From the sequence record LC727698.1: a DNA stretch of 64,000 nucleotides. One strand, given 5' to 3'. Both the position numbers and the translations under genes were made by a program. The notes under the pieces were generated by a model. That model worked only from the letters and a program-made list of their open reading frames with translations. It had not been told where the DNA came from and did no database searches. Below are positions 13,995-35,590 of this stretch, piece after piece. The number at the start of each line of letters is the position of its first letter. Position 1 is the first letter of the stretch.

Positions 13995-13998
13995 AATC

Positions 13999-14418: not shown

Positions 14419-15026
14419 AAAAAAGATTATTTCCATTTTGGTTATGGCCATATAGCTGGGGATTACCTGCTAAACAGAAAGCTATTGCAAAAGCAGAGTA
14501 TTATCTCGAAGGAGAAGAATTAGATAGGGAATTAGTAGCACTATCGAATACAACAAGCAAAGCCAAAGAAATTGAATTATTACATATTGATTTTAAATAT
14601 GGTAAAATAACAGAATACGAATACGATGTTGCTTTAGCTAAAACTCAATACGATCCGGGTCTGGCTTTAGACTTAAAATTAGCTGATATAGATTTAAAGC
14701 ATCATAAAATAAATGAAAGGGAACATAGCAAACGAATTGCTACCTTAAGAAAGTTACCTTGGGTAGATATAATAAAGATAGGCTTGTCTTCTTCTGATAT
14801 TTCGACAGGAGAAATGGAATTAGACTGGAATGAATATTTTATAGAAGAATTGCACGAATACGGATATGTAGGTAGGACTGATGAAGAAGTAGTAAATTTA
14901 TGGTTATCTACTTTATGTAAAAATATCGCATTAGACGAATTCGGTGGAATGGGATCTGTAGACGATCTTTCAGAAGATAATGACAAAATAGATAGCAAAG
15001 AAAACTATAAAAGGGAATTTAAGTAA
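14415..15026 (+). CDS. Hypothetical protein
   Basis: Overlapping-start ORF in operon. Confidence 0.7.
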   Translation: MKKRLFPFWLWPYSWGLPAKQKAIAKAEYYLEGEELDRELVALSNTTSKAKEIELLHIDFKYGKITEYEYDVALAKTQYDPGLALDLKLADIDLKHHKINEREHSKRIATLRKLPWVDIIKIGLSSSDISTGEMELDWNEYFIEELHEYGYVGRTDEEVVNLWLSTLCKNIALDEFGGMGSVDDLSEDNDKIDSKENYKREFK

Positions 15027-19758: not shown

Positions 19759-20874
19759 ATGGCTAAAAAAGAAAACATCGTAGAAACGTATCTTCGTCCG
19801 ACGGAGTGTGCTGCAATTATCCGCGGCATGTTCAAGGCGAAGCGTCCTGTGTTCCTCTGGGGTCCGCCGGGGGTAGGCAAGTCGGATATTATCGCCCAGT
19901 TGGGTTTCGAGGCTGACCGGCCGGTCATCGACATGCGTCTGATCCTCATGGATCCCACTGATATCAAGGGCATTCCGTACTACGATCCGAAAACCAATAC
20001 CATGCGCTGGGCTATTCCGTCCGATCTTCCGCAACCCGGCGAAACTACCCTGGACAACGCCATCCTGTTCCTGGACGAAATGAACTCGGCGCCGGCAAGC
20101 GTGCAGGGCGCTGCATATCAGCTCATCCTGAACCGTGCCATCGGTTCGTATAAGCTGCCCGATGGCGTCGACATTGTCGCTGCTGGTAACCGCGATACCG
20201 ACAAAGGCGTTACTTATCGTATGCCTAGTCCGTTGGCCAACCGTTTCGTTCACTTGCAGATCGAAACCAACTTCGAGGACTGGCAGCAGTGGGCGCTTAA
20301 CAACACGGTACACCCGGATGTAGTTGGCTACCTCACCCAGCACAAGCAGAACCTGTTCTGCTTCGATCCCCAAGATCGTAGCAAGGCGTTTGCTACTCCT
20401 CGAGCCTGGAAGTTCGTGTCCGACATCCTCCAACTCGCAGGAATCAACAAGGACCACCTGCTACGTGCGACTATCGCAGGAACCGTCGGCGAAAGTCACA
20501 GCTACTCCTTCATGCAGCACATGAAGTATGCTTCGCAGCTTCCGAAGCCGGAAGATGTACTAACCGGCCGGGTAACCGATCTCAAAGTCGAAGAGATCAG
20601 TGCTCGTTACTCGCTCGTGGTCAGTATGTGCTACACTCTAAAAGAGTGGCTGGCTGACGTAGCTGACGCCGACAAGAAGTACACTACCGAGGATTGGCAC
20701 AAGTCGGTAAACTTGTTCTTCGAGTACATGATGAACAACTTTGCCCAAGAAATGGTCATCCTCGGCGCGCGTACTGCGTTGCGCGAATACCAACTGCCGA
20801 TCAACAGAAAGTTGATCCCTTGCTTCACTAAGTTCTTCCAAGAGTACGGCAAGTTTATTGTCGACTCGAACTAA
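19759..20874 (+). CDS. MoxR-like AAA+ ATPase
   Basis: Walker A GPPGVGKS, Walker B LFLDE, AAGNR, LANRF; much higher GC than the flanks. Confidence 0.88.
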   Translation: MAKKENIVETYLRPTECAAIIRGMFKAKRPVFLWGPPGVGKSDIIAQLGFEADRPVIDMRLILMDPTDIKGIPYYDPKTNTMRWAIPSDLPQPGETTLDNAILFLDEMNSAPASVQGAAYQLILNRAIGSYKLPDGVDIVAAGNRDTDKGVTYRMPSPLANRFVHLQIETNFEDWQQWALNNTVHPDVVGYLTQHKQNLFCFDPQDRSKAFATPRAWKFVSDILQLAGINKDHLLRATIAGTVGESHSYSFMQHMKYASQLPKPEDVLTGRVTDLKVEEISARYSLVVSMCYTLKEWLADVADADKKYTTEDWHKSVNLFFEYMMNNFAQEMVILGARTALREYQLPINRKLIPCFTKFFQEYGKFIVDSN

Positions 20875-20882
20875 GTAAGGGC

Positions 20883-20917
20883 AAAATAAAAGGGGCTTAA
20901 AGCCCCTTTTATTTTAT
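20883..20917. terminator. Rho-independent terminator
   Basis: AAAAGGGGC-ttaaa-GCCCCTTTT. Confidence 0.85.
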
Positions 20918-20943
20918 ATATTCATAGGATACAGAATTATAGA

Positions 20944-21399
20944 ATGAGAACACTAACTTCATCTTTGTTTGTCATTATAATGACATTAGTAAATATTCTT
21001 TCTGTAATATATATGTATGTTACTAACGTGCCATTATTTTATATGCTTGTTGCATTTCCTAATCAGTGTGTTATATTATTAATTTCCTGTGTATACAGAA
21101 AAATCATAGCAGAATTTTTTTATATAAAGAGATTTAGTTTTTATAAACTAGAGGTCGTTTTAGATAAGCAAAGAGGGAGCTCAACAAAATATATTTTAAA
21201 ATTAAATGTATTGGGCGAAACATATTATTTCGATTTTCATGACAATTCTTTTTGCTGTCTTCCTATTTATGCAAATTTATATACTAATTCAGAATCATTG
21301 GCACTTAAAACATTTCAAAATTATGAAGACCAAGCTGAGCTATATAAAAAGAGCAGCGCCATTACTACTGTAATAAAATCCAGCAAAGGTACTAAGTAG
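20944..21399 (+). CDS. Hypothetical membrane protein
   Basis: Two TM-like segments; similar to 21401..21859. Confidence 0.6.
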   Translation: MRTLTSSLFVIIMTLVNILSVIYMYVTNVPLFYMLVAFPNQCVILLISCVYRKIIAEFFYIKRFSFYKLEVVLDKQRGSSTKYILKLNVLGETYYFDFHDNSFCCLPIYANLYTNSESLALKTFQNYEDQAELYKKSSAITTVIKSSKGTK

Positions 21400-21400
21400 T

Positions 21401-21859
21401 ATGAGACTTCCGTTCAGTAATATATGTTTAATATTAGTACCTTTATTTGCTGTATTGATTACTATATGTATTATTCTAGAATACCAAGAACATGTCGTAC
21501 TGGCACTAGTAATAATACCTTTAATAGTATGTGTACTGTCTGTCAGTATATGCGGGATTGCGATATTGTTTTATTTGATGATTCTCTGCGAAATATCTGA
21601 AAATAAATATTTTACTTCATTCGAAATAGAAGCTATAAAAAGAAAAGGTAAACCTACATTATATTTTATAAAAAAGATATGGCTGTCCGAAATATTTTAT
21701 TTTAATATAAAACAAAATAGATTTTCTATAAGAAGACATATACATAGTTCGTATGATTCATTAGAAAAAGCACTAAAAGAAGTAGAACATATATATAAAC
21801 AATACACAGAGACAGAATATAATAAAGTTGTGTTTAAAAAAAGGAAAAAATTAATATGA
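21401..21859 (+). CDS. Hypothetical membrane protein (paralog of the upstream gene)
   Basis: Same layout; T(K/L)Y(I/F)(L/I)K...(T/I)(Y/F)YF motif shared. Confidence 0.6.
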   Translation: MRLPFSNICLILVPLFAVLITICIILEYQEHVVLALVIIPLIVCVLSVSICGIAILFYLMILCEISENKYFTSFEIEAIKRKGKPTLYFIKKIWLSEIFYFNIKQNRFSIRRHIHSSYDSLEKALKEVEHIYKQYTETEYNKVVFKKRKKLI

Positions 21860-22209
21860 TCGTCAGCGAGATTATATATTCTATTTTCATAGCTGCATTA
21901 ATAACAGTTATGACTATACTATATATAAGTCTCAGAATAATAACATGTAAGATATTAAATAAGTCACTAAAGATTTCAGCTAATGTAATTATATATGGTA
22001 CCTCTAATATAGAATATGTATATATTCCTGAAATAAAATATAAATTTCTTTCTTTTAAAATAACACATTCTGGTTTAGTTATGTTTGACAAAGAGTTTGG
22101 ATTTAGAACACTAAACGATGCCATAAATGCATTAAATATGTATGTAGACGCCGATATTATAAAAATAGTATATAAAAAGGTACCCACATTTTATACTTGG
22201 CACGAATAA
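21856..22209 (+). CDS. Hypothetical membrane protein
   Basis: N-terminal TM segment; ATGA overlap. Confidence 0.55.
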   Translation: MIVSEIIYSIFIAALITVMTILYISLRIITCKILNKSLKISANVIIYGTSNIEYVYIPEIKYKFLSFKITHSGLVMFDKEFGFRTLNDAINALNMYVDADIIKIVYKKVPTFYTWHE

Positions 22210-23705
22210 TGGATAACTTTGATATAGAATTAAAAGAACTCATAAAAAATACAAATCCTAACGCATTAGGAAATGTAGTAAAAAGTAAAAAAGAAATATA
22301 TGAGGAATTAGTTCGTCGAACTAATTCCTTTCTTCGTGACGACGTTTCTGTGACAGAAAGGATTCATATATACTTAAATCCGGCTGATAATGTTTACTGT
22401 AAGTATGATAACAAACGGACACTAAAGCGAAATAAAGATACAAAACAAACCCAATACGGATTTTGCGGAAATAAAAGTAAATGTAAATGCCATATGGAAT
22501 GGTCTTTAAAAAATCATCCAGGCATGACACAATCCGGAAAAGAAAGTATGAAAACAAAAAGGATAAAAACTTGGATAGAAAAATACGGTGTCGATAATCC
22601 ATCTAAGTCAAAAGATATTATTGCAAAACAGCAATTAAGTAAAAAACATATAAAGCCAGATCATAGAACTATAAAGGAATTGGGATATAAAAAAGTAGTA
22701 GAACGACTTTCTAACATACTCACCCCTACGTTTAGTATAGACGAGTACGAAGGGTGCTTTAGAAAAAATGTGTATGACTGGATATGCAATGCATGCGGAA
22801 ATATAGTAATCGGACACGTAGATTATGGGTCTACTCCGAGGTGCAATGTTTGTAATCCTTTAACAAAGTCTGCCGGCGAAAATGAAATATCTAACTATAT
22901 AGTATCGCTAGGTTTTGATGTGATTAACAATGACCGATCTATATTATCTAACAAAGAATTAGATATAGTAATTAAAGGTACAAACATAGCAATAGAATAT
23001 AATGGTTGTTATTGGCATTCTACAAAACACAGAAAAAAATCATATCATGTAGATAAATTTATAGAATGCAGAGATAAAGGAATAAAGTTAATACAAATTT
23101 TAGATGTAGATTGGATATCAAAACAAGACATAATAAAATCAAGGTTAAAATCTATTTTAGGTTGTAGTGATAGAATATATGCAAGGAATACAACCATAAA
23201 AGAAATAACATTTAACGAATCTTTAACTTTTTTAGAAGAAACTCACATCCAAGGTTCTTGTCAATCATCTGTAAGACTAGGTCTATACGACAATGAGAAT
23301 TTGTTAGTAGCCGTAATGACATTTGGGAAATCTAGATATACAAAAGAGGAATATGAATTACTTAGATATGCTAGCAAAAATACTGTTGTAGGAGGAGCCA
23401 GCAAACTTCTTAAATATTTCATAAAAACATATTCCCCTAAATCTATTATTACATATGCAGACAGGTGTTGGTCAGATGGAAATTTATATAAACAGCTCGG
23501 GTTTACAAATGTAACCAAGAATGACAGAAATACAGGTTATTGGTATATAAAAGACAACATAAAATATCATAGATCTAATTTCATAAAATCTAAGATTTCT
23601 AATAAAAATAATTTACATCTAAGCGAATCAGAAATAATGGATAGTTTAGGTTATTTAAAATATTACGATTGCGGCAATTACAAATATACATTGCAGGTAC
23701 GCTAG
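22209..23705 (+). CDS. Second free-standing Vsr-like/EDxHD homing endonuclease
   Basis: SAGENEI...ELDIVI..IAIEYNGCYWHS core; C-terminal half clearly homologous to 4680..6362; TAATG coupling. Confidence 0.82.
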   Translation: MDNFDIELKELIKNTNPNALGNVVKSKKEIYEELVRRTNSFLRDDVSVTERIHIYLNPADNVYCKYDNKRTLKRNKDTKQTQYGFCGNKSKCKCHMEWSLKNHPGMTQSGKESMKTKRIKTWIEKYGVDNPSKSKDIIAKQQLSKKHIKPDHRTIKELGYKKVVERLSNILTPTFSIDEYEGCFRKNVYDWICNACGNIVIGHVDYGSTPRCNVCNPLTKSAGENEISNYIVSLGFDVINNDRSILSNKELDIVIKGTNIAIEYNGCYWHSTKHRKKSYHVDKFIECRDKGIKLIQILDVDWISKQDIIKSRLKSILGCSDRIYARNTTIKEITFNESLTFLEETHIQGSCQSSVRLGLYDNENLLVAVMTFGKSRYTKEEYELLRYASKNTVVGGASKLLKYFIKTYSPKSIITYADRCWSDGNLYKQLGFTNVTKNDRNTGYWYIKDNIKYHRSNFIKSKISNKNNLHLSESEIMDSLGYLKYYDCGNYKYTLQVR

Positions 23706-23719
23706 CATAATGTTATACT
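23691..23719 (+). promoter_or_regulatory. Sigma70-like promoter for the vWA gene
   Basis: TTGCAG-N17-TATACT, overlapping the endonuclease stop. Confidence 0.6.
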
Positions 23720-23760
23720 TGTAACGTAACACAAAACATATCATTTTAACGGAGCATTAT

Positions 23761-24945
23761 ATGTCCACTAAAACCCTAGAAGAACGCATCATCCGCGCCC
23801 GTGTTCAGTTGCTGTTGAACCATCCGTTTTTCGGGACCTTGGCGCTGCGCCTTAAACTAGTCGAGGCGAACGACTGGTGCCCTACTGCCGGTACTGATGG
23901 ACGCCATCTTTATTATAATACCAAGTTCCTCGAAGACTTGGACGATAAGGAACTTATCTTCCTCATCGGTCATGAGGTAATGCACGTCGTCTACGACCAC
24001 ATGGGGCGGCGTGGCAGCAGAGAGCCTAAACTGTGGAACTGTGCTGCTGACTTTGTTATCAACCTCGAATTGCACGATATGAAGATCGGCAAGCTTATCC
24101 ACCGTCCGGGTACTTGCGAGCCGTGCTTTGATGAAAAGTACCGCGGAATGTCCGCTGACCAGATCTATGAACTAATTAAGAAAGATCCGTCACTAAAAGA
24201 TAAAGATAGCTTCGACGTTCACCTCGAACCCGGTGGTGCCGGGAATGAAGACGGCGATGCTTCTGGCAAATCCGGTCCTATCCCTATGTCTGCAGATGAG
24301 CAAGCTGCTCTTCGGGACGAGATCACTGAAGCTGTTCTTCAGGCTGCTAAAGCTGCTGGTGTCGGCAACACTCCGGCAGGTGTGCGTCAGATGATCAGTG
24401 ACATCACTGAACCTAAACTAGATTGGCGCGAATTGCTAAACCAGACTATTCCGTCGCACATTAAATCCGACTATATGTGGACTCGTCCGTCGCGGAAGAG
24501 TTGGGGAACTGGTGCGACTCTGCCGGGTCAGATTGTTGATGACAAAATCGATGTTATCCTGGCACTAGACGCCTCTGGTTCGATTAGCTCTTCTCAGCTA
24601 AGGGATTTCTTAGGAGAAGTGTTAGGAATTATGGAACAGTTTAGTGACTTTTCCATACAAGTGCTAACGTTTGATACTAGAGTGTATGAATTCCGAAAAT
24701 ATACTCCCGACAATGCAGACGAAATCTATGAGTATCCCCTTAAAGGCGGCGGCGGCACCGATTTTGTGGCTGTGTTTAACTTCCTTAAAGATACGCTCAC
24801 TGAACCGCCGCATCAGTTAGTATTCTTCACTGACATGGAAGTGTATGACTACGGCGATCCTAACTATTGCGATACTGTGTTTATAAACCACGGTCGCAAA
24901 GGTGTAACTGCACCGTTTGGCATCACCATCGACTACGACGAATAA
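23761..24945 (+). CDS. DUF2201-type metallopeptidase + vWA domain protein (probable MoxR partner)
   Basis: TAGTDG, HEVMH (HExxH), WNCAAD, MIDAS LDASGSIS, GGGGTDF. Confidence 0.85.
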   Translation: MSTKTLEERIIRARVQLLLNHPFFGTLALRLKLVEANDWCPTAGTDGRHLYYNTKFLEDLDDKELIFLIGHEVMHVVYDHMGRRGSREPKLWNCAADFVINLELHDMKIGKLIHRPGTCEPCFDEKYRGMSADQIYELIKKDPSLKDKDSFDVHLEPGGAGNEDGDASGKSGPIPMSADEQAALRDEITEAVLQAAKAAGVGNTPAGVRQMISDITEPKLDWRELLNQTIPSHIKSDYMWTRPSRKSWGTGATLPGQIVDDKIDVILALDASGSISSSQLRDFLGEVLGIMEQFSDFSIQVLTFDTRVYEFRKYTPDNADEIYEYPLKGGGGTDFVAVFNFLKDTLTEPPHQLVFFTDMEVYDYGDPNYCDTVFINHGRKGVTAPFGITIDYDE

Positions 24946-24957
24946 TCGTAGGTTAAA

Positions 24958-24990
24958 ACAAAAAAGGGGCTTATAAGCCCCTTTTTTGTT
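24958..24990. terminator. Rho-independent terminator
   Basis: AAAAAAGGGGCTT-at-AAGCCCCTTTTTT. Confidence 0.85.
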
Positions 24991-24991
24991 G

Positions 24992-25140
24992 ACTAGTTTT
25001 AACTACTTAAAGCGCTGTAGCATAGCTGTACATAAGCGCTAAATTAGCGCAAATTTGCGTGTTTTTATGCGTTACAATACATAGCTAATACTACGCATGC
25101 AAAACGCGCTATAGCGCAAATTTGCGTGTTTTAAGCACAT
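24992..25140. repeat. GA/GG/TC/CC-free tract A with a 21-bp direct repeat
   Basis: 149 nt lacking the four dinucleotides; TAGCGCAAATTTGCGTGTTTT at 25045-25065 and 25112-25132. Confidence 0.85.
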
Positions 25141-25226
25141 CTACTATACTTTTTATTTTGCATTGTATTTAATGCACAGGGACAGTATTGTATGCTTGTT
25201 TGTGTCAAATAAGACAATAAAATGTT

Positions 25227-25469
25227 ATGTTACATTATATTCCAGTTATACTATTCGTTTATTTTATAGGAAACATATTATCATTGTTTTTATACAATGT
25301 AGTATCATACAGCACACTATTTCCATATAGTATGTTACACAAACAAAACCACAAGCAAACTCTGTTTCATAAATTTATAAAAATGTGGTGGTTTTCTTAC
25401 TTAAACATTATTGTACTCAGTTGTGCTTGCATATATGTAATAGGCAAAAAATATATAAAGAGAATTTGA
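25227..25469 (+). CDS. Small hypothetical membrane protein
   Basis: Hydrophobic ORF before a terminator. Confidence 0.4.
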   Translation: MLHYIPVILFVYFIGNILSLFLYNVVSYSTLFPYSMLHKQNHKQTLFHKFIKMWWFSYLNIIVLSCACIYVIGKKYIKRI

Positions 25470-25524
25470 AATATTATAAAGATTTTATTAAGATTATGAT
25501 AAATTTAATATAGAACTAATTTAC

Positions 25525-25555
25525 AAAATAAAAGGGCTTAACGCCCTTTTATTTT
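25525..25555. terminator. Bidirectional terminator between convergent blocks
   Basis: AAAATAAAAGGGC-ttaac-GCCCTTTTATTTT. Confidence 0.8.
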
Positions 25556-25561
25556 AATCAA

Positions 25562-25882
25562 TTATTCTATTTTTGCATGAATAGTACATAGCATATTGTG
25601 ATATGCTTCCTGGTATTCAGATTCTAGTTTAATCATATCTAAGTAGATAAAAATAGCCTCTATTTTGCCTAACTTAGACAACCGTTCATCTTTTTTGCTC
25701 TTAATTAGATTTCCTATAAACTGTCTGTCAAATTTATTAACAGAACCGTTTTCACAAATAACTTCTACATAATCTACATAAGAAAGATGTAAATCGTCTA
25801 AGCTTATGCTAGGCAGAAATTCTTCTATATCAAACGAAATCCCCTCCTGTTCGGGGAGTTTTTTAAGATAGATTTTGGCCAT
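25562..25882 (-). CDS. Hypothetical protein
   Basis: GGAG RBS on the minus strand. Confidence 0.65.
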   Translation of the reverse strand: MAKIYLKKLPEQEGISFDIEEFLPSISLDDLHLSYVDYVEVICENGSVNKFDRQFIGNLIKSKKDERLSKLGKIEAIFIYLDMIKLESEYQEAYHNMLCTIHAKIE

Positions 25883-26015
25883 ATATGCTACTCCGTTCTA
25901 TGCATATAGATATTTAGCAATTATACAAAAATGCATAGTTTTAATAGCACACACAAACACGATGCAGCGTATTAGTTAGTTTTATTACCAAGCAAAATTG
26001 TGCATTTTTTGCCCA

Positions 26016-26046
26016 AAAAAAACAGCCCTAGCTAGGGCTGTTTTGT
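26016..26046 (-). terminator. Rho-independent terminator
   Basis: AAAAACAGCCCTA-gc-TAGGGCTGTTTTT. Confidence 0.8.
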
Positions 26047-26049
26047 TAG

Positions 26050-26319
26050 TTAAAGCTTTTCTAAAACAAGTGTTAGCGCATCTTCTCCTATATTAAAGTG
26101 TTGTGTCGCACTAACATGACAAAACTTGCCATATATATCTAATGCAGATATTACAACATCTTCAATAACTTTTTCTATCATTTCACTAGTATCTTTACAT
26201 CTACATTTTAGTGTAATGTTATCCATAGTTTCTTCAATGGATATAATATTAATGCCCTTTACTTCTAAAGCTTCTTTTATTTCTTGCATTTTACTCCGCG
26301 CGAGTGGAATCGCGCTCAA
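26050..26319 (-). CDS. Hypothetical protein
   Basis: Packed minus-strand ORF. Confidence 0.55.
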   Translation of the reverse strand: MSAIPLARSKMQEIKEALEVKGINIISIEETMDNITLKCRCKDTSEMIEKVIEDVVISALDIYGKFCHVSATQHFNIGEDALTLVLEKL

Positions 26320-27031
26320 GTTTTTGAGAAACCTTAAGTTCTAATTCCTCAACGGCCTTAGCTTTGCTTTCTTCTAGTAAAGCTCTAGCCTTTTCTTCTT
26401 CTCGTTTCTGCCTAGCTTCCCTGCGCTTTTCCTTGCGTTTTTCTAGGCGCTCTTTGTAACGTTCTTCTAGTTCTTCTTCTGTAAGTTCACGCTGACGACC
26501 TGGGGCTGGTTTTAGTTCAGGACATAAAGAATATGCAAGCTCTAACTTTGCATCAGCCTCTTCTTTAAGCAACCGTGCTTGAACTATAAGACCTTCTGCT
26601 CGTTGTTTATCAGTAATAGATTCTTCAACTACAGGTACTGATGCAGTTTCTGTATGTACAGGGTCGGCGCCTGCTAATGCAGCTTCACGTATCTGAGAAT
26701 TAATAAGTTCTAAAGCAACATTAGTACCTGGGTACGGTTGCATAAAAACCTGTCTAACTTCCACTTTGCGTAAAAAAGACCGATCGTGCATTGTACGAAG
26801 TGCAGGCAATCCGTCACCTAAAAGTTTATTATTTAGGACAGTATACAAATCGACAGAATTTTGTCCTTCTCTACTTTCAACTATAGTTTTTAGGTTATCT
26901 TGGTACATGTCTGGTAGTCTATCTATTTCAACTACTAAACAATGAGTAGGATCATCGGGTAATTCCCGGAACACGACATACACACGTGTTCCGGTATTAG
27001 CGATTTTCCCTATGTGGCGCTTAAGACTCAT
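26291..27031 (-). CDS. Hypothetical protein with charged coiled-coil C-terminus
   Basis: 246-aa ORF with GGAGA RBS. Confidence 0.75.
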   Translation of the reverse strand: MSLKRHIGKIANTGTRVYVVFRELPDDPTHCLVVEIDRLPDMYQDNLKTIVESREGQNSVDLYTVLNNKLLGDGLPALRTMHDRSFLRKVEVRQVFMQPYPGTNVALELINSQIREAALAGADPVHTETASVPVVEESITDKQRAEGLIVQARLLKEEADAKLELAYSLCPELKPAPGRQRELTEEELEERYKERLEKRKEKRREARQKREEEKARALLEESKAKAVEELELKVSQKLERDSTRAE

Positions 27032-27048
27032 TAGGAAATCTCCGTGTA

Positions 27049-27321
27049 TTATTTGGCTTCAGTTTCAGCTTCTTGCTCTTCTTGTTTAGGTTCAATTGCT
27101 GATACAAAAGATTTAACTTTACTAAACACTCCACCGACGCTGGCCATTTCTTCTGCGCGGAATGCTCCGCGTTGGCATGCAACATCAACTATGGTTAGTA
27201 AATCTTTAATGTCTTGTACACCTAGACGAGGTTCTTCGCTTGCTTGTTCAGTCATATTCTCTTGATCTACAACTTCTTTTTCTACAACTTCTTTTTCTAC
27301 AGCTTTAGCTTTCTTAGCCAT
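27049..27321 (-). CDS. Small acidic hypothetical protein
   Basis: GGAGA RBS; core DVACQRGAFRAEE. Confidence 0.75.
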   Translation of the reverse strand: MAKKAKAVEKEVVEKEVVDQENMTEQASEEPRLGVQDIKDLLTIVDVACQRGAFRAEEMASVGGVFSKVKSFVSAIEPKQEEQEAETEAK

Positions 27322-27916
27322 TTAACATTTCTCCGTAATTGTGTGTCGGGCTCGATTCAATTTCTGATATACATTTTTTATCAGTAATAATTATTAAGTT
27401 TGAATCCCACGGCAAATAAAATTTCCAATCACTATCTCTTATTAAAATAGGTAATTGTTGCCTACGAGAAACAAGTTCATAATAAGTAGGTCTATGTGGC
27501 ATTTTAATGGGAATAATATTCTTGTTATCGCCTTTTTTGTTATTACAAACTTTACATGCAGTGCATATATTAGTCCAATTTGTCTTACCACCGTATCTCT
27601 TAGGTAAAACATGATCTAGTGTTAGCTGTTTAACAGGAAACGTTCTAAAACAAAACTGACACTGATAGTTATCCCTTAAATATACGTTGTTTCTGGAAAA
27701 CTTTGTTTTATGATTCCATTTAATGTATTCAGTTGACATTACAATAGACGGAACCTTCATAGTAATACTGGGAGAATTAACTTCCCAATTGTCGTAATTT
27801 TTTAAAATTTCGACCTTGCCAAGCGATACTAATTTAATACTAGTTTGCCAGTCTACAACAGATAATGGTAACATGCATAACGGATTACCGTCTTTGTTAA
27901 GTATCAAAGTATCCAT
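27314..27916 (-). CDS. HNH endonuclease (McrA-like)
   Basis: RDNYQCQFC...LTLDHVLP...GGKTNWTN...CKVCNNKKG. Confidence 0.9.
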   Translation of the reverse strand: MDTLILNKDGNPLCMLPLSVVDWQTSIKLVSLGKVEILKNYDNWEVNSPSITMKVPSIVMSTEYIKWNHKTKFSRNNVYLRDNYQCQFCFRTFPVKQLTLDHVLPKRYGGKTNWTNICTACKVCNNKKGDNKNIIPIKMPHRPTYYELVSRRQQLPILIRDSDWKFYLPWDSNLIIITDKKCISEIESSPTHNYGEMLNG

Positions 27917-27943
27917 TTATAAACTACACAGTTATTTATCTTT

Positions 27944-28186
27944 TTATTTCATGTATTTCTTTAATTCTTCCGGAAAACCTTTTAATGTTACAAACACTTG
28001 ATCTTCCTGTTTTTCGAAATCAATGTTATAAAAAATTTCATTTTTTGTAGGTTGTATTTCTTCTAAAATAGTATACTTTCCATCACAATTAGAGTCTAGC
28101 CATACACCTAAGTAAAGCTTAAATACCTCTCCTAACCCGTTAGCAGATCGTTGTACACTAAACCTAGTCATATTAACAAAATCCAC
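27944..28186 (-). CDS. Hypothetical protein
   Basis: Packed ORF. Confidence 0.55.
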   Translation of the reverse strand: MDFVNMTRFSVQRSANGLGEVFKLYLGVWLDSNCDGKYTILEEIQPTKNEIFYNIDFEKQEDQVFVTLKGFPEELKKYMK

Positions 28187-28421
28187 TTAATATTCCTGGG
28201 TCTACATATTGTGAAAAGTATACAGTAGATCTACTATCTTGTATTTTTATATACCAAGGATATTTTATATTGGTACTAATAACTGCAATGAGTTTTTCTA
28301 CTTCATCCTTAGAAATATGAACTACATATTTGTTATAAAGTAAATTAGAATATAGAGTAGTGCCTTTTAATGAATAAAATTCGTCTTCTGTTAATCTATA
28401 TTCCCGTGTGACAGAAATCAT
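28173..28421 (-). CDS. Hypothetical protein
   Basis: AAGGAG RBS. Confidence 0.6.
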   Translation of the reverse strand: MISVTREYRLTEDEFYSLKGTTLYSNLLYNKYVVHISKDEVEKLIAVISTNIKYPWYIKIQDSRSTVYFSQYVDPGILSGFC

Positions 28422-28541
28422 ATACGTTTCTCCTTTTATTAAAGTATTTATCTACGTATATATTTCCTAAGAAGGGAAACAACGCCTTCCCTAGCTAGTG
28501 TGCATATTATATAACAGCATATTACCGTTGTCAATATATTT

Positions 28542-28967
28542 TTAACTAGTCTTTGTCAGAAGGTAAGTATGTTCATTATTGGTATTTTTGTTTGACTGTA
28601 TTGTGTAACCATATTGAGTAGCCATTTTTGTTGCGAGTCTATTGTATAATTTAACTCTAGATGGCTCGGATAGATCGGCAGTAAAATATATTTGGTTAGG
28701 TTTTAATTCAGAAATAGCACGTTTGGTAATATCTAATATAGTAGAGAATACTTTAAATTCATTGCCGGTTCCAGTGACCGCAGTATCATAATAATAATCG
28801 TCAACATCAACTTCCTTTGCAGTAAACGATATTAATAGTCTTCCATTAACCATAGTTTCTATGACTCTATATTTCATATTACCAACAATAAAATATGCAT
28901 TAACGGTTCCATTAGTGTTGGTATACTGATATTTTTCAATCTGATCGAATAGTTCAAATAAGTGCAT
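28542..28967 (-). CDS. Putative internal virion protein
   Basis: N-terminal MHLFE (L-x-E); AGGA RBS; upstream TAAATA. Confidence 0.5.
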   Translation of the reverse strand: MHLFELFDQIEKYQYTNTNGTVNAYFIVGNMKYRVIETMVNGRLLISFTAKEVDVDDYYYDTAVTGTGNEFKVFSTILDITKRAISELKPNQIYFTADLSEPSRVKLYNRLATKMATQYGYTIQSNKNTNNEHTYLLTKTS

Positions 28968-29037
28968 AAAAATAGTCCTTAATATGGATATTTATCTTAT
29001 ATATAAATTAAAAGGGGAATTTAATTCCCCTTTAGCA

Positions 29038-29784
29038 TTACTTACCTTTTCTTACCAAAATTGACATACAATGTGCTAATTCGTCATAGTAATTTGGAAA
29101 TAATTGCTTTACTTTTTTATGAAAACTCATAGGCATTGTTTTATTTTTATCTGCTATATAGTAATATTCGGGATCAACTTTCATTAATCTAATAGCATCA
29201 GTGCCAGTTAATTGTATTTTATTTAATAATGTTTCAGTTTCCCTAGATTTAGGTAATTTATTATTACATATTTCAGAAATTACAAGGCAAGGTTTAATGT
29301 TATCTATATTGTTATTTGCTATAAATTCGATAAATTTTGTTCTAAACGAAATTTTAATTAAATGCTCAGGAATAGGTGTATTATATACTATTGAGTTTAA
29401 ATCTAAATCTGTTAATATTTTTGCCATACGTTTTATACAGTCTTTAGAATTATAATAAATTACACGATAGTATGGAGTATTATGCCAGACTTGTATATAC
29501 TTCATTAACACTTTGGGGTGAATACTAACAATAGTTTTTAACCGCTCGGTTGGAATAATATCGCCTAATGTGTGTATATGTCTAGCAACAAACTTGTCTG
29601 ACATTTTAGAAACTAATCTAGTTTTTGCTGCTGTAGATGCATCTACAGCAACATGATACAGTAGTTCGTCGTCATCAGAATAATTATTCTCTATTAGTTT
29701 TACGATGTTATGTTTTTTGCTATTATACGTATTTAATAAGATTTCCTTCAAATCTTCTTTTTCTATATAAATTTTGTTATTCAT
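29038..29784 (-). CDS. Hypothetical protein
   Basis: Coupled ORF in a three-gene run. Confidence 0.65.
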   Translation of the reverse strand: MNNKIYIEKEDLKEILLNTYNSKKHNIVKLIENNYSDDDELLYHVAVDASTAAKTRLVSKMSDKFVARHIHTLGDIIPTERLKTIVSIHPKVLMKYIQVWHNTPYYRVIYYNSKDCIKRMAKILTDLDLNSIVYNTPIPEHLIKISFRTKFIEFIANNNIDNIKPCLVISEICNNKLPKSRETETLLNKIQLTGTDAIRLMKVDPEYYYIADKNKTMPMSFHKKVKQLFPNYYDELAHCMSILVRKGK

Positions 29785-30736
29785 TTGTTTTTCTTTTTCC
29801 TTTGCCTGTAGATAAAATATACATAAAATATTCTTCGTTATTTTTTAATTCAGGATACATCTTAAACATTTCTGACCAACTAGTTTTTGTTAATTTTTCG
29901 AGATGCTTAGGTACTATAGGCTTAAAGGTTGTTGTATATTTCTTAGCAAATGCCACTAAGTTAGCACCTGTAAACGGAGTGCCGTGTACAAATTCTTTAG
30001 AAGAAAGTTCATCCGATATATCGTTTTCGTTAATTTCAAAAAAGTTAACAATATTGTATACATCAGATTTAGAAATGTACCTATTTTTTATTATATCGTT
30101 TTTTATTGTATCTAAAGTAAATATTTGCTTAAGATCGTTTACTGTATCTAAAGCATATTTAGGACACAATTTATTAGACTTATTAAAGTCAGATACTGTA
30201 TGTTTAACTGCTGGCGGCAAATGGTAATAATACGAAAACGAATTATAAGTAAATACAAGATTTGCCATACTACACAGACGTTTAATATGTTTATCTATTA
30301 CATTGGCATATAATTTATCATAATTTTTATATGTTTTTAAATTATGTAAATCAGACATATGTATTTTATTTAAACACAGCATTAATGGAATACAGTCACT
30401 GTACCTAGCTGCCACATTATTTACAATAGGTTTACTGTTGAATTTAGATTTAAACTCATTAATTATTTTTTCATTAAACAAAATAGAAATGTCTTTTATA
30501 AGAAATTCATGCAATGCTCTGCATAACCCATCAAACTGTGTACTATTCTTAAATGCATAAAGACTAGTAGATAAACTATCATTGTTAAAAAACGATGATA
30601 ATGCATGGTGTGCATCCGATGAATGTGCTAACGGTATGTCATATCTAATAGAACTTTCTAATATATATTCTATATCGTTTCGTTCTACCGAATTCCAGTC
30701 AATTTGCGATAACATTTGTGATACTGATTTTTTCAT
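29777..30736 (-). CDS. Hypothetical protein
   Basis: 319-aa coupled ORF. Confidence 0.65.
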   Translation of the reverse strand: MKKSVSQMLSQIDWNSVERNDIEYILESSIRYDIPLAHSSDAHHALSSFFNNDSLSTSLYAFKNSTQFDGLCRALHEFLIKDISILFNEKIINEFKSKFNSKPIVNNVAARYSDCIPLMLCLNKIHMSDLHNLKTYKNYDKLYANVIDKHIKRLCSMANLVFTYNSFSYYYHLPPAVKHTVSDFNKSNKLCPKYALDTVNDLKQIFTLDTIKNDIIKNRYISKSDVYNIVNFFEINENDISDELSSKEFVHGTPFTGANLVAFAKKYTTTFKPIVPKHLEKLTKTSWSEMFKMYPELKNNEEYFMYILSTGKGKRKTNE

Positions 30737-31629
30737 TAGTTTCGGGGACCTTTAAGTTTTGCTAGTACATGTTGTTCTGACCCAGCCAAATGAGGGAAGA
30801 TCTTTATAAGTTTGTTCCAGTACGAATACGGCAAAAAATCGAGATTTATATGATCTAAATATTTTATATAATTACTATGCAACCTATTCCTCGAAAATAT
30901 AGTCAATATATGTCGTCCTGCTATATAAGACCAATCTATATTTTTAAGAAATTTAATACAACTGTCAGTAGACATTGTCTGACCATTTGCTTTATGCATA
31001 TAGAATAGCGAAGACATCCTTTCAAAAAGAAACCAGTGATATTGTTTATTTTTAGAAATAGTATCAAACCCTACAAATTTTACATATTCTTCAAAAACAG
31101 AATATCTTTTACTACAAAAAAAATTAAATACTGTTTTATCCAACAAAACGTTATGTCGTTTTAATTCTTTTAAAATAAGTCTTACTATGTTTAAATCAGG
31201 TAAAGATTGTATGGTACACAATTGCGTTATTATATCTTTAGATAATGCTTTTCTCGGTTTTAAATTCTTTAAAACAACATAAAATAATTTATGACATGTT
31301 ATAGGAACTTTTATAGGAAACATTGAATTTGAAAATTTTCCAATACATTGCCTGACAAGATATAAATCTTTTTTACTTATAGATCTGTTATATTCACTAA
31401 TAGAAGATGAATAATTACTTGATATAAAGTTTACTAATTTGGGACTTTTAATTTCCATAAGAACATTCAATACAGTAGCATTGAACGGTATATATTCAAC
31501 ATCAATAGAATTACAGACTGCAATTAGTGCATCTTTAGCTGAATTATTAGCAATTGTTATTTCTTTATTTTTTCTAAATTTAATGAAATATTCTAATTCA
31601 CTTAAAGCTTTAATGTAACTAATATCCAT
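30736..31629 (-). CDS. Hypothetical protein
   Basis: 297-aa coupled ORF. Confidence 0.65.
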   Translation of the reverse strand: MDISYIKALSELEYFIKFRKNKEITIANNSAKDALIAVCNSIDVEYIPFNATVLNVLMEIKSPKLVNFISSNYSSSISEYNRSISKKDLYLVRQCIGKFSNSMFPIKVPITCHKLFYVVLKNLKPRKALSKDIITQLCTIQSLPDLNIVRLILKELKRHNVLLDKTVFNFFCSKRYSVFEEYVKFVGFDTISKNKQYHWFLFERMSSLFYMHKANGQTMSTDSCIKFLKNIDWSYIAGRHILTIFSRNRLHSNYIKYLDHINLDFLPYSYWNKLIKIFPHLAGSEQHVLAKLKGPRN

Positions 31630-31719
31630 ACATATACCGTAAAAATTTTTACCATACTATAAAATATGTATATTCAATAGTCAACTGTGTTTGGTAACAA
31701 AATGTGGTAATTAGGCACT

Positions 31720-31748
31720 TGACATTGGTATTGTCTTTTAGTAAACTG
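31720..31748 (+). promoter_or_regulatory. Sigma70-like promoter with no downstream ORF
   Basis: TTGACA-N17-TAAACT. Confidence 0.7.
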
Positions 31749-31753
31749 TGCGC

Positions 31754-32480
31754 TTGCGTAAGAAATGTATATACGATAGTGCTATATGTATATACAGACA
31801 AGTGGCTCTGTTCCATCATTGGATATTGGTAGTAGAAACTATCCCCATCGTGCTGTTATTGTAGTTCCGATAGTGTCGGGTTAACGTTTTAACAGTTATT
31901 TAAATTATGATTTTGGGTGCCACAGAGATTGTACTTACTAAAAGGACTTAGTAAGAACCGCATATAATCTCGAAACTTGTGTAGGATGTTGGTCTAACCA
32001 CGGCATAGAATATATGCCTCAACTACTACACGGAAAGGATGATGCTCTGGTCGAAACAGAGTTTCTATAAATCTTTCAGTATAGACTCCGTATGGCTGAA
32101 AGTTGAAACACCAACATCAATAGACTATAGTTTTTGTTAGTGTGGCTATAGTTTATTCCGGCATTGAAAGTATATACAGTGATGCGAGACAGTAAGCATT
32201 AGTAGCAACTGTATATATGAGTAAGAGGATGCGTTTACAATGAGGAATTACCTATCGGTGCCCGCCTCAGGGATTGCACTTCCCGACGTACACTAAACTT
32301 CGTACCATACCGAAACATACGTTTCTGTTATTACGATTTCCTTCCCAAACGGGGAGGAAATCTTCTCCGCCCGAATATCATAAGATCAAAAGCATTAATA
32401 ATTAATACATAAAATTCGTTTAAGTAGTTATTAAGTATATGAGTTGTAGTTTACGAAAACGAATATACTTAATAACTACC
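31754..32480 (+). ncRNA. Putative large structured non-coding RNA, family not recognised
   Basis: No ORF of 60 aa or more; GC above the flanks; about 10 local hairpins plus long-range helices whose imperfections are mostly G-U on the + strand; promoter upstream and terminator at 32733-32760. Confidence 0.65.
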
Positions 32481-32594
32481 AGTGAAGCTTGCTTCGCTGT
32501 TTAAAATTGCAATTTGTATTTTCAATTTTATATTTCGAAATGTGTTTTTGAAAATCAATCTATAAAATATAATTTTAAATATTATTTTTAAATG

Positions 32595-32681
32595 TCATTT
32601 TGTGATTTTAATTTAAAATACTATTTCATGATTTAAAATGGAAATATATTAAACAATATCATTTTGTGATTTTAATTTAAA
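32595..32681. repeat. 23-bp direct repeat in AT-rich zone
   Basis: TCATTTTGTGATTTTAATTTAAA at 32595-32617 and 32659-32681. Confidence 0.8.
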
Positions 32682-32732
32682 CAATTCCATATAAAACTAT
32701 TTTGTCTATTTCTTTTATAATCTTAAAGTCAT

Positions 32733-32763
32733 TAAAAACCCTACAGACGTAGGGTTTTTATTT
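32733..32763. terminator. Bidirectional terminator
   Basis: TAAAAACCCTAC-agac-GTAGGGTTTTTA. Confidence 0.8.
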
Positions 32764-33443
32764 GATTATATGGTATTCGGTTTTAGATATTCAGATTATT
32801 ATAATTAATAATATCTGTACGATAACTATATTTTATAGAAATACATTTACTAATTACATTTATCAATGAATGGTTATTTTCTTTATATTTAATGCGTCTC
32901 AGGGTATATAGCAAATATGATAAATCAAGACACATAATATATTGTGTCTATATTTTTAATTTCATTAATCTACATAATTGTTTATTAATGTATACAGTTA
33001 TATACGTTATGTTGTAATAACAAACTAAATTATATAGAGAATACACATTAAATTCTGTTTTGTGTCAAATCAACATTACATATATCATTATGTATTGATA
33101 CTTGCTGTATATATAAAAATAATTAGTTATTATGTGCTTTAGAAGAATTCCATTATAATTAGTTTTCTGTGTCATTTGTCAAATGATGAAAAACATAATT
33201 CTTTCATCTATTTTTATTAAATGTTATTCAAGATTTATAATATAATTTTATAATGTTTGCAATTTATGACACAAGCTATTTTAATAGAATTATACTATTC
33301 AAAGTTTTGACTTATTTTGTGTGTAAACGACAAAAATAGGCATATATATAAAAAGCACACCTGTTTCCTGTATGAAACAAAATAGTATTTTATTAAAAAT
33401 AGTGTATAGTAGTAAAAAACATCATTAATCATGCACGCAATTT

Positions 33444-33665
33444 ATGGCAAACGTAATTAAAGAACTTCATCCCATTAAAGGATATTGCATAGTTGTGCGT
33501 CATCCGGGCGATACTAGATTTAGCTGGGTATCGCTAGACAATCAATATATTTTGGTAGACAATCCAGTACTTTTAAATGATGAATTTGATAATTGTAAAA
33601 ACGAATGGCCAGATGCTGAAATAAAAATAGTAGAAGTGTATGTTGTCCCGGAGAAGGTGTTATGA
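33444..33665 (+). CDS. Hypothetical protein (paralog pair with the next gene)
   Basis: C-terminus VEVYVVPEKVL vs MEIYLVPENFL. Confidence 0.6.
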   Translation: MANVIKELHPIKGYCIVVRHPGDTRFSWVSLDNQYILVDNPVLLNDEFDNCKNEWPDAEIKIVEVYVVPEKVL

Positions 33666-33880
33666 ATGCTATATCCAAAATATCTCCGTCTAAATGTTAC
33701 ACTGTCGTAGTTACAGATAATAATTGGAAATCATGCACGTGGATAAATTATAATGATTCTCCGGTTGTAGAATACGATATTTCTAAAATATCACCTATAT
33801 TGGAATCTTGTAAGAAAAAGTTTGGCAATAGTAATGTAAGGGTAATGGAAATATATTTAGTACCGGAAAACTTTTTATGA
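33662..33880 (+). CDS. Hypothetical protein (paralog of the previous gene)
   Basis: ATGA overlap; shared termini. Confidence 0.6.
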   Translation: MNAISKISPSKCYTVVVTDNNWKSCTWINYNDSPVVEYDISKISPILESCKKKFGNSNVRVMEIYLVPENFL

Positions 33881-34086
33881 AAATTCGTTATATATTACTA
33901 TTAATATTATCAGACTTACAAACACTAGTAAAGGTACAGGCATTTTTATTTGCATTGCTTCCCTGTGTTATTTTGTTTCTTCCTGCATCGTTCTTTATTA
34001 CATTAGTTATAACAATTGCCATAGTATGGATAATAAGTTTACTATCTTATTTGCTTATTAATAAACTTATACAAACGAGGAGCTAA
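33877..34086 (+). CDS. Small membrane protein
   Basis: Hydrophobic; ATGA overlap. Confidence 0.5.
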   Translation: MKIRYILLLILSDLQTLVKVQAFLFALLPCVILFLPASFFITLVITIAIVWIISLLSYLLINKLIQTRS

Positions 34087-34088
34087 AA

Positions 34089-34286
34089 ATGGCAGGTCTA
34101 AGAAAATGCATTGATGAATTCTGCAAAGGATGCATCTATGATCCTGAGTCTACCGGTAGTTGGCGACAACAAGTAGAAAATTGTAGTGCTAAATCATGCG
34201 AACTATGGGAAGTTCGACCTGTTTCGGTAGGAACTAAACAAGAAAGAATTATTGCAAAACAAAAAAGTTCACAAGAACTTGCGTAA
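34089..34286 (+). CDS. Small Cys-rich protein
   Basis: CxxCxYD...W...C....C.LW; GAGGAG RBS. Confidence 0.65.
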   Translation: MAGLRKCIDEFCKGCIYDPESTGSWRQQVENCSAKSCELWEVRPVSVGTKQERIIAKQKSSQELA

Positions 34287-34322
34287 GACAGCTAACCAAC
34301 CTAACTCTAGGTTAACCCTAGG

Positions 34323-34351
34323 TTGACTCATTTGTTGGATAGCACTATACT
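34323..34351 (+). promoter_or_regulatory. Sigma70-like promoter
   Basis: TTGACT-N17-TATACT. Confidence 0.75.
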
Positions 34352-34389
34352 TGTAGCATGTTTAAAAAACATAGCTAGGAGTAGCATTT

Positions 34390-35547
34390 ATGAGTCAGAT
34401 GTACGTAACTATCACTAATGGAATGTACCGTAACCAGCAAGTAAACGGCACATTCCTTTTACTCGAAGATGTGAAAGTTACTGGGTCGGGAAAACGAGTT
34501 ATTAACGTATTAGGTGCATTGCCGGAATGGTCTCAACATAAATGTAGAGTTACACTCGGTAATGACGCAACAGTACAGTATTCGAACGAACAAGGAGAGG
34601 TTTTAGATTTGCCTAATGTTATACGTCCTTTTGTGGGCGAAAATAATAATAATAATGTTCCTGCATCTAGTCGCGGTACAGTGTATGAAGGCACTGCAAT
34701 AGAAATTGACTACGAAAAGCAATACCAACAACTAGAATCCGAAAACGATGCAATGAATCGTATCAAACGGACCTTTGAGATTGTAAATGAACTAACAGAG
34801 GCAGCCGCAGCAGGCGAAATCCGTTCTATGATCATTTCTGGTCCTCCCGGAATCGGAAAAAGTTTCGGTGTAGAAGAAACACTAAACAGGTGTTTCTTGT
34901 TGGATAAAATTAAAGATAATAAAGAACCGTTTGAGATCGTAAAGGGCGCTGCAAGTGCAATTGGTGTTTACCAAAAGCTTTACGAATTTAAAGATAAAGG
35001 TAAAATCCTTATTTTCGATGATTGCGACCGCGTACTATTTGACGAAGATAGTCTAAATCTCCTTAAAGGTGCATTAGATACTACTAAGCGTAGAACTATT
35101 TACTGGCTTAGTGAGTCCCGTGTTTTAAAAGAAAATGATATTCCACCTAAATTCGATTTCGAAGGTAGTGTAATTTTCCTTACTAACCTTAACTTCGAGG
35201 ATACAAAGTCCCGAATCGGAAGGCACCTAGAAGCAATTATGTCCCGGTGTCATTATTTAGACATGGAAATTAGTAGTACGAGAGACCAGATCCTTCGTAT
35301 TAAACAAGTTGTGCGCGACGGGATGCTTAGTAAATATGAATTTAATAACGGAGAAGATGAAGAAATCCTAGAATATATTATCGATAATCAGAATGATCTG
35401 CGAGAACTTAGCTTGCGTATGGTAATTAAAATTGCCGATCTGATTAAATTCAAAAAAGATGGTTGGCGAGAATATGCAGAGACAACTGTACTGAAACGGA
35501 ATGCAAAATTCCGGCGGCTGTATAACGAAAAGTACAGTGATATTTAA
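34390..35547 (+). CDS. AAA-family ATPase
   Basis: Walker A GPPGIGKS, Walker B LIFDD. Confidence 0.8.
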   Translation: MSQMYVTITNGMYRNQQVNGTFLLLEDVKVTGSGKRVINVLGALPEWSQHKCRVTLGNDATVQYSNEQGEVLDLPNVIRPFVGENNNNNVPASSRGTVYEGTAIEIDYEKQYQQLESENDAMNRIKRTFEIVNELTEAAAAGEIRSMIISGPPGIGKSFGVEETLNRCFLLDKIKDNKEPFEIVKGAASAIGVYQKLYEFKDKGKILIFDDCDRVLFDEDSLNLLKGALDTTKRRTIYWLSESRVLKENDIPPKFDFEGSVIFLTNLNFEDTKSRIGRHLEAIMSRCHYLDMEISSTRDQILRIKQVVRDGMLSKYEFNNGEDEEILEYIIDNQNDLRELSLRMVIKIADLIKFKKDGWREYAETTVLKRNAKFRRLYNEKYSDI

Positions 35548-35590
35548 TACACAATAAAGTAGCAAGGATGCTACTTTCCGGAGATACGGT

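Follow-up and report, generated by a model that had tools for sequence, protein, structure and literature searches.

The DNA considered here is a 64-kb window of Pseudomonas phage 30-3 (LC727698.1), a PA5oct-like jumbo phage, and our subject is a set of five spacer tracts, T1 to T5, from which the dinucleotides GA and GG are excluded on both strands, completely in four and with a single exception in T5. The window, meaning the whole of this stretch, corresponds to approximately 186–250 kb of phage 30-3 and 214–278 kb of PA5oct, and among its contents are genes for a DNA polymerase, QueE and structural proteins, a cluster of tRNAs, and numerous small open reading frames (ORFs) on the + strand. 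Its bases 20000–40000 are 100% identical to phage 30-3 and 98.5–99% identical to ten other PA5oct-like jumbo phages (genus Wroclawvirus, ~285 kb). PA5oct encodes no RNA polymerase and rifampicin blocks it, and thus it relies on the host RNA polymerase. The exclusion is under selection, and we propose that the tracts are probably regulatory islands kept free of a guanine modification that the phage appears to place elsewhere in its DNA.

Tracts without GA or GG

Exclusion of GA and GG from both strands means that one strand lacks GA, GG, TC and CC, so that no G precedes a purine (R) and no C follows a pyrimidine (Y). Four uninterrupted GR/YC-free runs of 143–203 nt are present (Table 1), and a fifth tract is split into 86 + 50 nt by its single GA. 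An earlier reading of this DNA, the initial annotation, had listed these tracts, and on recounting all of its coordinates were exact. It had also suggested that the longest such runs be compared with shuffled controls. Across 100 sequences of 64 kb simulated with a first-order Markov model, the longest run averaged 61 nt and reached 95 nt at most, which places runs of 143–203 nt far beyond chance. Given the window's probabilities that a G is followed by Y (0.49) and that a C is preceded by R (0.56), finding all 49–59 G or C of a tract in permitted contexts has a probability of approximately 1e-13.5 to 1e-16 per tract. On the strength of the simulations and these values, chance was rejected as an explanation.

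The G+C content of the tracts (27–38%) is not below that of the window (31.8%), which excludes AT-richness as the cause and bears out the initial annotation on this point. Relative to the window, GA/TC and GG/CC both fall to 0, while AA/TT (1.07x) and AG/CT (0.89x, still present as had been noted) are little changed and GC (3.3x) and CG (1.95x) are enriched. No trinucleotide is excluded beyond what the dinucleotides predict, and therefore the rule is that G never stands before a purine on either strand, and nothing more.

Table 1. Positions in the window of the tracts, their internal elements and other features.
Feature	Position	Strand	Remarks
DNA polymerase gene	2240-7502	+	split into 2240-4687 and 6363-7502
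Hef-like homing endonuclease ORF	4674-6362		splits the DNA polymerase gene
QueE cluster	8666-15026	+	
Weakly GT-B-like protein	10288-11349		353 aa
Rossmann-fold/epimerase-like protein	12087-12605		172 aa
Phosphoribosyltransferase	12617-13051		144 aa
QueE-like radical SAM enzyme (7-carboxy-7-deazaguanine synthase)	13122-13994	+	PHROG 2076, E=6.6e-49
DUF2201 gene	23761-24945		
Terminator hairpin of DUF2201 gene	24957-24990		T1 begins 2 nt past it
Island T1	24992-25179		strict run 24992-25140 (149 nt), on to 25179 past a single TC at 25140/41
T1 21-nt repeats	25045-25065, 25112-25132		
AT-dinucleotide-free stretch	26345-26524		180 nt; in - strand gene 26291-27031
Short GR/YC-free runs	32970-33037, 40803-40880, 43197-43268		in spacers just upstream of + strand genes
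Island T5	39068-39203		between ORFs 38794-39099 and 39169-39639; one GA at 39153/39154
TA-free stretch	41129-41275		147 nt; in ORF 41014-41373
Island T2	50624-50783		160 nt; downstream of ORF 49474-50559
T2 19-nt repeats	50653-50671, 50745-50763		
T2 terminator-like hairpin	50690-50715		
ORF over T2	50587-50823		78 aa; probably spurious
Island T3	52994-53196	+	203 nt (217 nt in PA5oct); predicted tandem promoter cluster of tRNA operon
T3 diverged third unit	52979-53025		
T3 promoter unit of variable copy number	53061-53196		79 bp
T3 first -35/-10 pair	53069-53074/53092-53097		
T3 second -35/-10 pair	53148-53153/53171-53176		
tRNA-Met	starts 53212		
Short GR/YC-free run	54774-54829	+	precedes tRNA-Arg (54849)
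Island T4	62699-62841		143 nt; starts at stop codon of ORF 62409-62705; ~170 nt upstream of TilS-like PP-loop gene
ORF starting in T4	62709-63008		99 aa; doubtful
TilS-like gene	63011-63622	+	203 aa

The tracts also form a distinct class of spacers. When the whole PA5oct genome (287 kb) was scanned for GR/YC-free runs, those longer than 140 nt occurred at the four window loci only, and two loci in the left early region reached ~105 nt. The PA5oct counterparts of the five islands lie at 239311-239498, 253410-253545, 264979-265138, 267312-267557 and 277085-277227. No run longer than 72 nt is found between 44 and 232 kb, that is, in 188 kb of replication and structural genes, and the islands are thus confined to a few spacers of the early and accessory regions. 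The shorter runs span 48–105 nt and are individually only marginally above chance. A general property of intergenic DNA was rejected, because 44 of the 49 other spacers of at least 136 nt have a normal density of excluded steps per G+C (0.3–0.6; genome value 0.475). Elsewhere, the longest GR/YC-free run measures 58 nt in 284 kb of IMG/VR phage contigs and 65 nt in CAjan; for 41 kb of pf16 it is 31 nt. No islands are present in relatives (40–45% identity) of gp340 and the TilS-like gene, the modification-gene content of these relatives not being established, and for gp385 no relatives were found in IMG/VR.

Selection seen in natural variation

Natural variation shows that the exclusion is under selection and is not a relic. 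In a 38-kb region aligned from seven sister genomes (98.5–99% identity), 19 columns with single-nucleotide polymorphisms (SNPs) fall within tracts, and in 18 of them both alleles are free of excluded steps, the sole exception being a GG in T2 of PA5oct and Callisto. A neutral, transition/transversion-weighted model expects 39% of changes to create an excluded step (binomial P=0.001), and of 1221 comparable SNPs outside the tracts 582 do so (48%, with 52% keeping the rule; Fisher P=1e-4). The effect holds for GA/TC alone (0/19 versus 31%, P=0.0016) and for GG/CC alone (1/19 versus 26%, P=0.036). AG/CT and CA/TG, which served as controls in the same test, showed no effect. SNP density in the tracts is about half that of the surroundings. 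Because tract SNPs change the sequence yet stay within the restricted alphabet, they argue against a relic and also against binding sites that are simply conserved.

Elements written in the restricted alphabet

Each of the five tracts occupies a spacer whose flanking genes are on the same strand. One follows a terminator immediately and another immediately precedes the tRNA cluster, and their earlier placement "mostly at operon boundaries" was therefore roughly right. T3 resembles a tandem promoter cluster. It contains two units of 79–82 bp, in each of which an A-rich, UP-like stretch is followed by TTGCAA and, after a spacer of 17 bp, by TATAAT, with 10 of 12 consensus matches in each, and a third, diverged unit has a -35 element that reads TTGTAA in 30-3 and TTGCAA in PA5oct. 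The cluster ends 15 nt upstream of tRNA-Met, and its promoters end 15–35 nt before this gene. Copy number of the 79-bp unit varies among sister phages, PAC2 having one unit fewer.

Sigma-70-type promoters in GR-free runs have -35 boxes of the form TTGCAA, TTGCTA or TTTACA, without the GA of the consensus TTGACA. Judged by the presence of -35 and -10 elements at 16–18 bp spacing upstream of a transcribed unit, such promoters are predicted in T3 and in the short runs before ncRNA001 and ncRNA002. Specifically, GR-free runs in PA5oct with TTTACA-N17-TATACT/TATTAT stand directly upstream of these two non-coding RNA (ncRNA) genes, each of which accounts for 2.4–5% of phage reads at early and middle timepoints in PA5oct RNA-seq data. 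GR-free runs with TTGCTA- or TTTACA-type promoters also precede gp450, gp53 and gp121, and the run before gp34 has a weak promoter match only. The PA5oct RNA-seq paper names gp34–gp105 and gp450 as early and highly transcribed.

T1, T2, T4 and T5 are richer in G+C and carry terminator-like hairpins composed of GC, CG, AC/GT and CA/TG steps only. Each has a two-unit direct repeat at 67–93 bp spacing. These four also share the word ATAACGC(A), which occurs 10 times where even a model trained on these very tracts expects 1.0. In T1, the two exact 21-nt repeats (TAGCGCAAATTTGCGTGTTTT) are each a palindrome plus a T-run, terminator-like in appearance, and the word AAGCGCTGTA is also present. T2 has two exact 19-nt repeats (AGCATGCAAAATAACGCAT) and three ATAACGC words in addition to its hairpin; T4, with two ATAACGC words, begins at its left end with an inverted copy of ~45 nt from the right end of T2. 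T5 has two diverged units (CTTATRCTTAAAAAG ... ATAACGC), which lie ~90 bp apart, as well as a GC-rich hairpin of 8 bp (TAACGCGC/GCGCGTTA) formed without GG or CC. The initial annotation had described internal repeats and motifs shared in both orientations, and we find both: a two-copy direct repeat is present in every tract, and TGCAAAATAACGCAT occurs twice in T2 (+) and once in T4 (-). That element types as unrelated as these share one alphabet suggests a constraint on the DNA as such.

The 78-aa ORF that overlaps T2 is probably spurious, since it is uncalled in three of six sister annotations and a GR/YC-free tract cannot hold TGA on either strand. The reality of the 99-aa ORF that starts in T4 is doubtful. 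T2 (50624-50640) and T4 (62696-62712) both open with GGAATTTAAA(AA)ATGC, which contains a Shine-Dalgarno-like GGA, a TAA and an ATG; short or doubtful ORFs thus begin right at the island boundary, one of 11 codons in T2 and one of 99 codons in T4, and might encode a leader peptide.

The modification and its sequence context

The excluded steps coincide with the context assigned to the modified base of this phage group. PA5oct DNA resisted EcoRI, XbaI, BsaI and BmrI, and the authors concluded that G is modified at GA and/or GG (PMC12191111). In the PA5oct genome, these enzymes have 22–104 sites, all with GA or GG, whereas HindIII, FspI, BsgI and NdeI, which make up the rest of the ten-enzyme panel not named as resisted (the cutting enzymes are unlisted in that preprint), have 32–139 sites with no GA or GG inside the site. 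Because the sites of these four resisted enzymes all carry GA or GG and those of the other four carry none, the context deduced from the digests equals the excluded set. ApaLI (GTGCAC) does not fit; with only 2 sites in 287 kb, the apparent resistance to it carries no information. A second preprint reports resistance of PA5oct DNA to EcoRI in vitro and to all tested nucleases in vivo, and public Oxford Nanopore reads exist for PA5oct (PMC7318152).

The ApaLI site is itself one of the two most avoided hexamer palindromes in PA5oct, both of which lack GA and GG: GTGCAC occurs 2 times (sites 123710 and 130991) versus 28 expected, and AGTACT 15 times versus 50 expected. This is as would be expected if only sites that the modification cannot protect need purging.

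QueE is the only 7-deazaguanine pathway gene found in the window. Elsewhere in PA5oct lie genes for FolE (46% identity to CAjan, E=3e-34) and for QueD (E=8e-6), and the genome thus contains the three genes, FolE, QueD and QueE, by which the preQ0/CDG pathway of Dpd/Queuovirinae-type systems is recognized. The published Domainator and Foldseek analysis reports only QueE and PTPS and does not name DpdA (PMC12191111). No homologues of the QueE neighbors of CP220 or pf16 were found in PA5oct, and the CxCxxC zinc motif, sought as a regular expression, is in no real ORF. The genes next to QueE encode a phosphoribosyltransferase, a Rossmann-fold/epimerase-like protein and a weakly GT-B-like protein, and the cluster could be a new route to make or attach the modified base. 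It also includes a 540-aa protein for which no relatives could be detected in Pfam, PHROGs or the PDB.

Downstream of T4, the TilS-like gene, annotated as tRNA(Ile)-lysidine synthetase, encodes a PP-loop ATPase domain only (Pfam ATP_bind_3, E=1.7e-36), and its product is the only PP-loop enzyme that we saw. Because QueC, which was not found in the phage, is also a PP-loop enzyme, the TilS-like protein might act on the deazaguanine carboxylate and not on tRNA.

A parallel in Iggyvirus

A second phage provides a parallel with a different motif. In Pseudomonas phage iggy, G is replaced by dPreQ0 strictly at GA, as mapped by nanopore sequencing (PMC10484667), and its genome has four GA/TC-free runs of 152–171 nt, rich in GG/CC, versus a simulated maximum of 85–100. 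In the divergent intergenic control region of iggy (~800 bp to 1 kb; 59.9–60.6 kb plus the left end), GA/TC per G+C falls to 0.054 versus 0.155 in the flanks, with GG/CC, AG/CT, AC/GT and CA/TG unchanged or higher and with many CCAGG-type repeats. Across five Iggyvirus genomes, SNPs create GA/TC in 9 of 80 cases inside this region, whereas outside it 81 of 286 do so (P=0.0012); none of four control classes gave a significant difference. The excluded set therefore tracks the motif of each phage, GA in iggy and GA plus GG in PA5oct-like phages, which makes avoidance of CRISPR targets or DNA mechanics a poor explanation.

Proposed role of the islands

Taken together, these data lead us to favor the view, with somewhat better than even confidence, that the tracts are selected, hard-wired, modification-free regulatory islands. 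We infer that the modification is specific to GR contexts and that the islands serve to make sites recognizable to proteins that contact G in the major groove. In the mechanism that we propose, selection would keep certain regulatory spacers of the PA5oct-like phage free of GA and GG on both strands, these being the contexts in which a bulky 7-deazaguanine-type base appears to take the place of the phage's guanines. Island guanines would then all remain unaltered, even where the virion DNA is fully modified. Candidate readers are host RNA polymerase with sigma-70, acting on the injected DNA, and a further putative factor that would bind ATAACGCA and the palindromes.

An extension of this proposal, which we advance tentatively and consider rather unlikely, is that the islands act as a built-in timer. 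GA/GG-free promoters would be read by sigma-70 on the injected, modified genome and fire first, and the TTGACA promoters of the replication and structural modules, which would carry a modified G in the -35 box, would be masked until unmodified daughter DNA appears. If this is true, the island pattern would display one half of an epigenetic early/late switch, used by a phage without its own RNA polymerase, and the reasoning would extend to Iggyvirus.

Several observations weigh against our proposal that the islands are modification-free regulatory DNA. Some restriction enzymes tolerate 7-deazaguanine. The assignment of GA and GG rests on restriction digests with ten enzymes in one preprint (PMC12191111). 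The initial annotation had assumed a TGT-like gene, which our searches did not confirm: the 40 window ORFs scanned yielded QueE but no Pfam TGT or PHROG match to TGT/DpdA, and when the complete PA5oct genome was searched by tblastn with DpdA of CAjan and of iggy, the best E was 0.18. QueC of CAjan, iggy or pf16 has no match in the PA5oct genome either, and for both DpdA and QueC a PDB sequence search and tblastn with genes of four phages (CAjan, iggy, pf16, CP220) were also without a match; a very divergent DpdA3-like protein may be present. The phosphoribosyltransferase beside QueE would also fit incorporation at the nucleotide level, which is expected to be independent of sequence context.

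Other such points concern transcription and the comparison genomes. A strong sigma-70 promoter was looked for in T1, T2, T4 and T5 and none was found. The genome has 8 perfect TTGACA-N17-TATAAT promoters, most of which belong to the replication and structural modules, and the published PA5oct promoter logo is TTGAC/TATAATA. Because GA-carrying TTGACA promoters are used in the genome, modification at GA cannot block transcription generally, and promoters in general need not be GR-free. One of the GA/TC-free runs of iggy is a Q/P-rich coding repeat, which explains it, and we discounted this run accordingly. CAjan, with a GA plus GGC motif, has no islands and no such depletion, so the phenomenon is not universal. 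Finally, a genome-wide test of GR-free versus GR-containing palindrome avoidance was not significant (P=0.26). The modification-free-island reading of the initial annotation thus gains from the evidence of selection, the match of GA/GG to the digests and the parallel in iggy, and loses from the absence of a TGT/DpdA gene in our searches and of islands in CAjan.

Alternative explanations

One alternative, which we regard as improbable, is target avoidance, in which GA, GG, TC and CC are purged as recognition elements of a nuclease, of the protospacer-adjacent motifs (PAMs) of P. aeruginosa CRISPR systems (type I-F CC, type I-C TTC), or of a phage-encoded nuclease directed at host DNA. The excluded set does remove every CC/GG and TTC/GAA from both strands, the SNPs show selection against re-creating excluded steps, and in vivo resistance of PA5oct to every nuclease tested has been reported. 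Avoidance of this kind, however, gives no reason to purge a few spacers and spare 40-odd other long ones, and no trinucleotide-level signal, such as loss of TTC only, is seen. The Iggyvirus comparison is also unfavorable: its depleted zone keeps and even enriches GG/CC, so that the type I-F PAM cannot be the common cause, and the phage's own motif fits.

A similarly improbable alternative is that each tract strings together binding sites, hairpins and promoters whose words (ATAACGCA, GCGCAAATTTGCG, AAGCGCTGTA, TTGCAA...TATAAT) happen to lack GR, with little spacer between them. Over-represented shared words, the two-unit repeats in every tract and the halved SNP density are all consistent with this idea. 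Exact repeats, however, occupy no more than roughly one quarter of T1 and T2. The tracts cannot be aligned with one another beyond short segments, and their trinucleotide content is as the dinucleotides predict. Moreover, 18 of 19 SNPs alter the sequence yet obey the rule, as do promoters, terminator stems and A-tracts, which are unrelated to one another.

We consider two further alternatives, both raised in the initial annotation in some form, to be very improbable. In the first, the tracts are relics of local hypermutation by a YC-specific cytidine deaminase that turned TC/CC into TT/CT on both strands. Known DNA cytosine deaminases have a combined preference for YC (TC plus CC), which matches, and the pattern is strand-symmetric, but the composition and the SNPs disfavor such C-to-T loss: the product steps AG/CT and AA/TT are not enriched, G+C is at the genome average, the excess of GC and CG would require an ancestor of ~55–65% G+C, and a one-off event predicts re-creation of GR by 39–48% of SNPs where 1 of 19 is observed. 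In the second, the tracts belong to a family of dispersed repeats, mobile or duplicated, or else are genes for structured ncRNAs; T2 and T4 share 15–19-mers in both orientations and internal repeats are present, but pairwise local alignment scores of 19–34 are close to those of shuffled sequence (16–27), with T2/T4 alone higher (46 over ~45–50 nt, inverted), no terminal inverted repeats or target duplications are seen, Rfam at its gathering threshold finds 12 tRNAs only, folding z-scores (-1.1, -1.1, -0.8, -2.2, +0.1) are no better than dinucleotide shuffles, and the RNA-seq-based PA5oct annotation places no ncRNA at the tracts.

Other features of the window

Two further stretches of the window lack a dinucleotide over an unusual length. 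The TA-free stretch (simulated maximum 90 nt) lies in a locally GC-rich small gene that appears compositionally foreign to this 32% G+C genome and may be host-derived. The AT-dinucleotide-free stretch (simulated maximum 97 nt), pyrimidine-rich on the + strand and within a hypothetical gene, is probably a Lys/Glu/Arg-rich coding region of the minus strand. The DNA polymerase gene is split by the Hef-like ORF, and endonuclease genes like it recur several times in the genome. GC skew was considered as a marker of a replication origin and was uninformative, as the skew follows gene orientation.

Implications

Hypermodified phage genomes are usually regarded as disguised throughout, and no description of motif-free islands was found in the CAjan, iggy, PA5oct and END-nuclease papers or by full-text literature search. 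If our proposal is true, sequence alone predicts a modification motif, here GA and GG, and a scan for excluded dinucleotides could serve other uncharacterized phages. It would also mean that 7-deazaguanine-type bases cost enough in protein-DNA recognition to shape a genome. The islands would be the few unprotected spots in the DNA of a therapy-candidate jumbo phage, which matters for host defence, phage engineering and the success of END-type nucleases. The proposal further raises the question of whether modification status helps to time phage gene expression.

Comparison with known systems

Like the strong tandem early and stable-RNA promoters with UP elements in phage T5, T7 (A1–A3) and rrn (P1–P2), island T3 has tandem -35/-10 pairs with 17-bp spacing and A-rich upstream stretches, and it stands directly before a tRNA operon in a phage that depends on host RNA polymerase. 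Unlike these promoters, T3 has TTGCAA in place of TTGACA as its -35 element, and the whole of its ~200 bp is GR-free. The other four islands have no promoter comparable to this strong tandem type.

The closest chemical relatives are the DpdA systems of CAjan (GA and GGC) and iggy (strict GA), which, like PA5oct-type phages, encode FolE, QueD and QueE. In both groups the G modification appears limited to G before a purine and protects from restriction and CRISPR nucleases. PA5oct-type genomes differ in that no DpdA or QueC was found in them.

The islands also invite comparison with the avoidance of restriction sites and palindromes in phage genomes, in which selection likewise removes short words because of an enzyme that acts there. 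Classical avoidance is genome-wide and directed against host enzymes, whereas exclusion from the islands concerns dinucleotides and is total, but only in patches of 140–250 bp, and the enzyme avoided is apparently the phage's own.

A final analogy is with vertebrate CpG islands and with the Dam GATC sites in pap, IS10 and Mu mom, where regulatory DNA is epigenetically unlike the bulk and readable by proteins. Those systems keep the motif and control the access of the enzyme, whereas the phage islands would delete the motif itself, such that their unmodified state may be hard-wired into the sequence.

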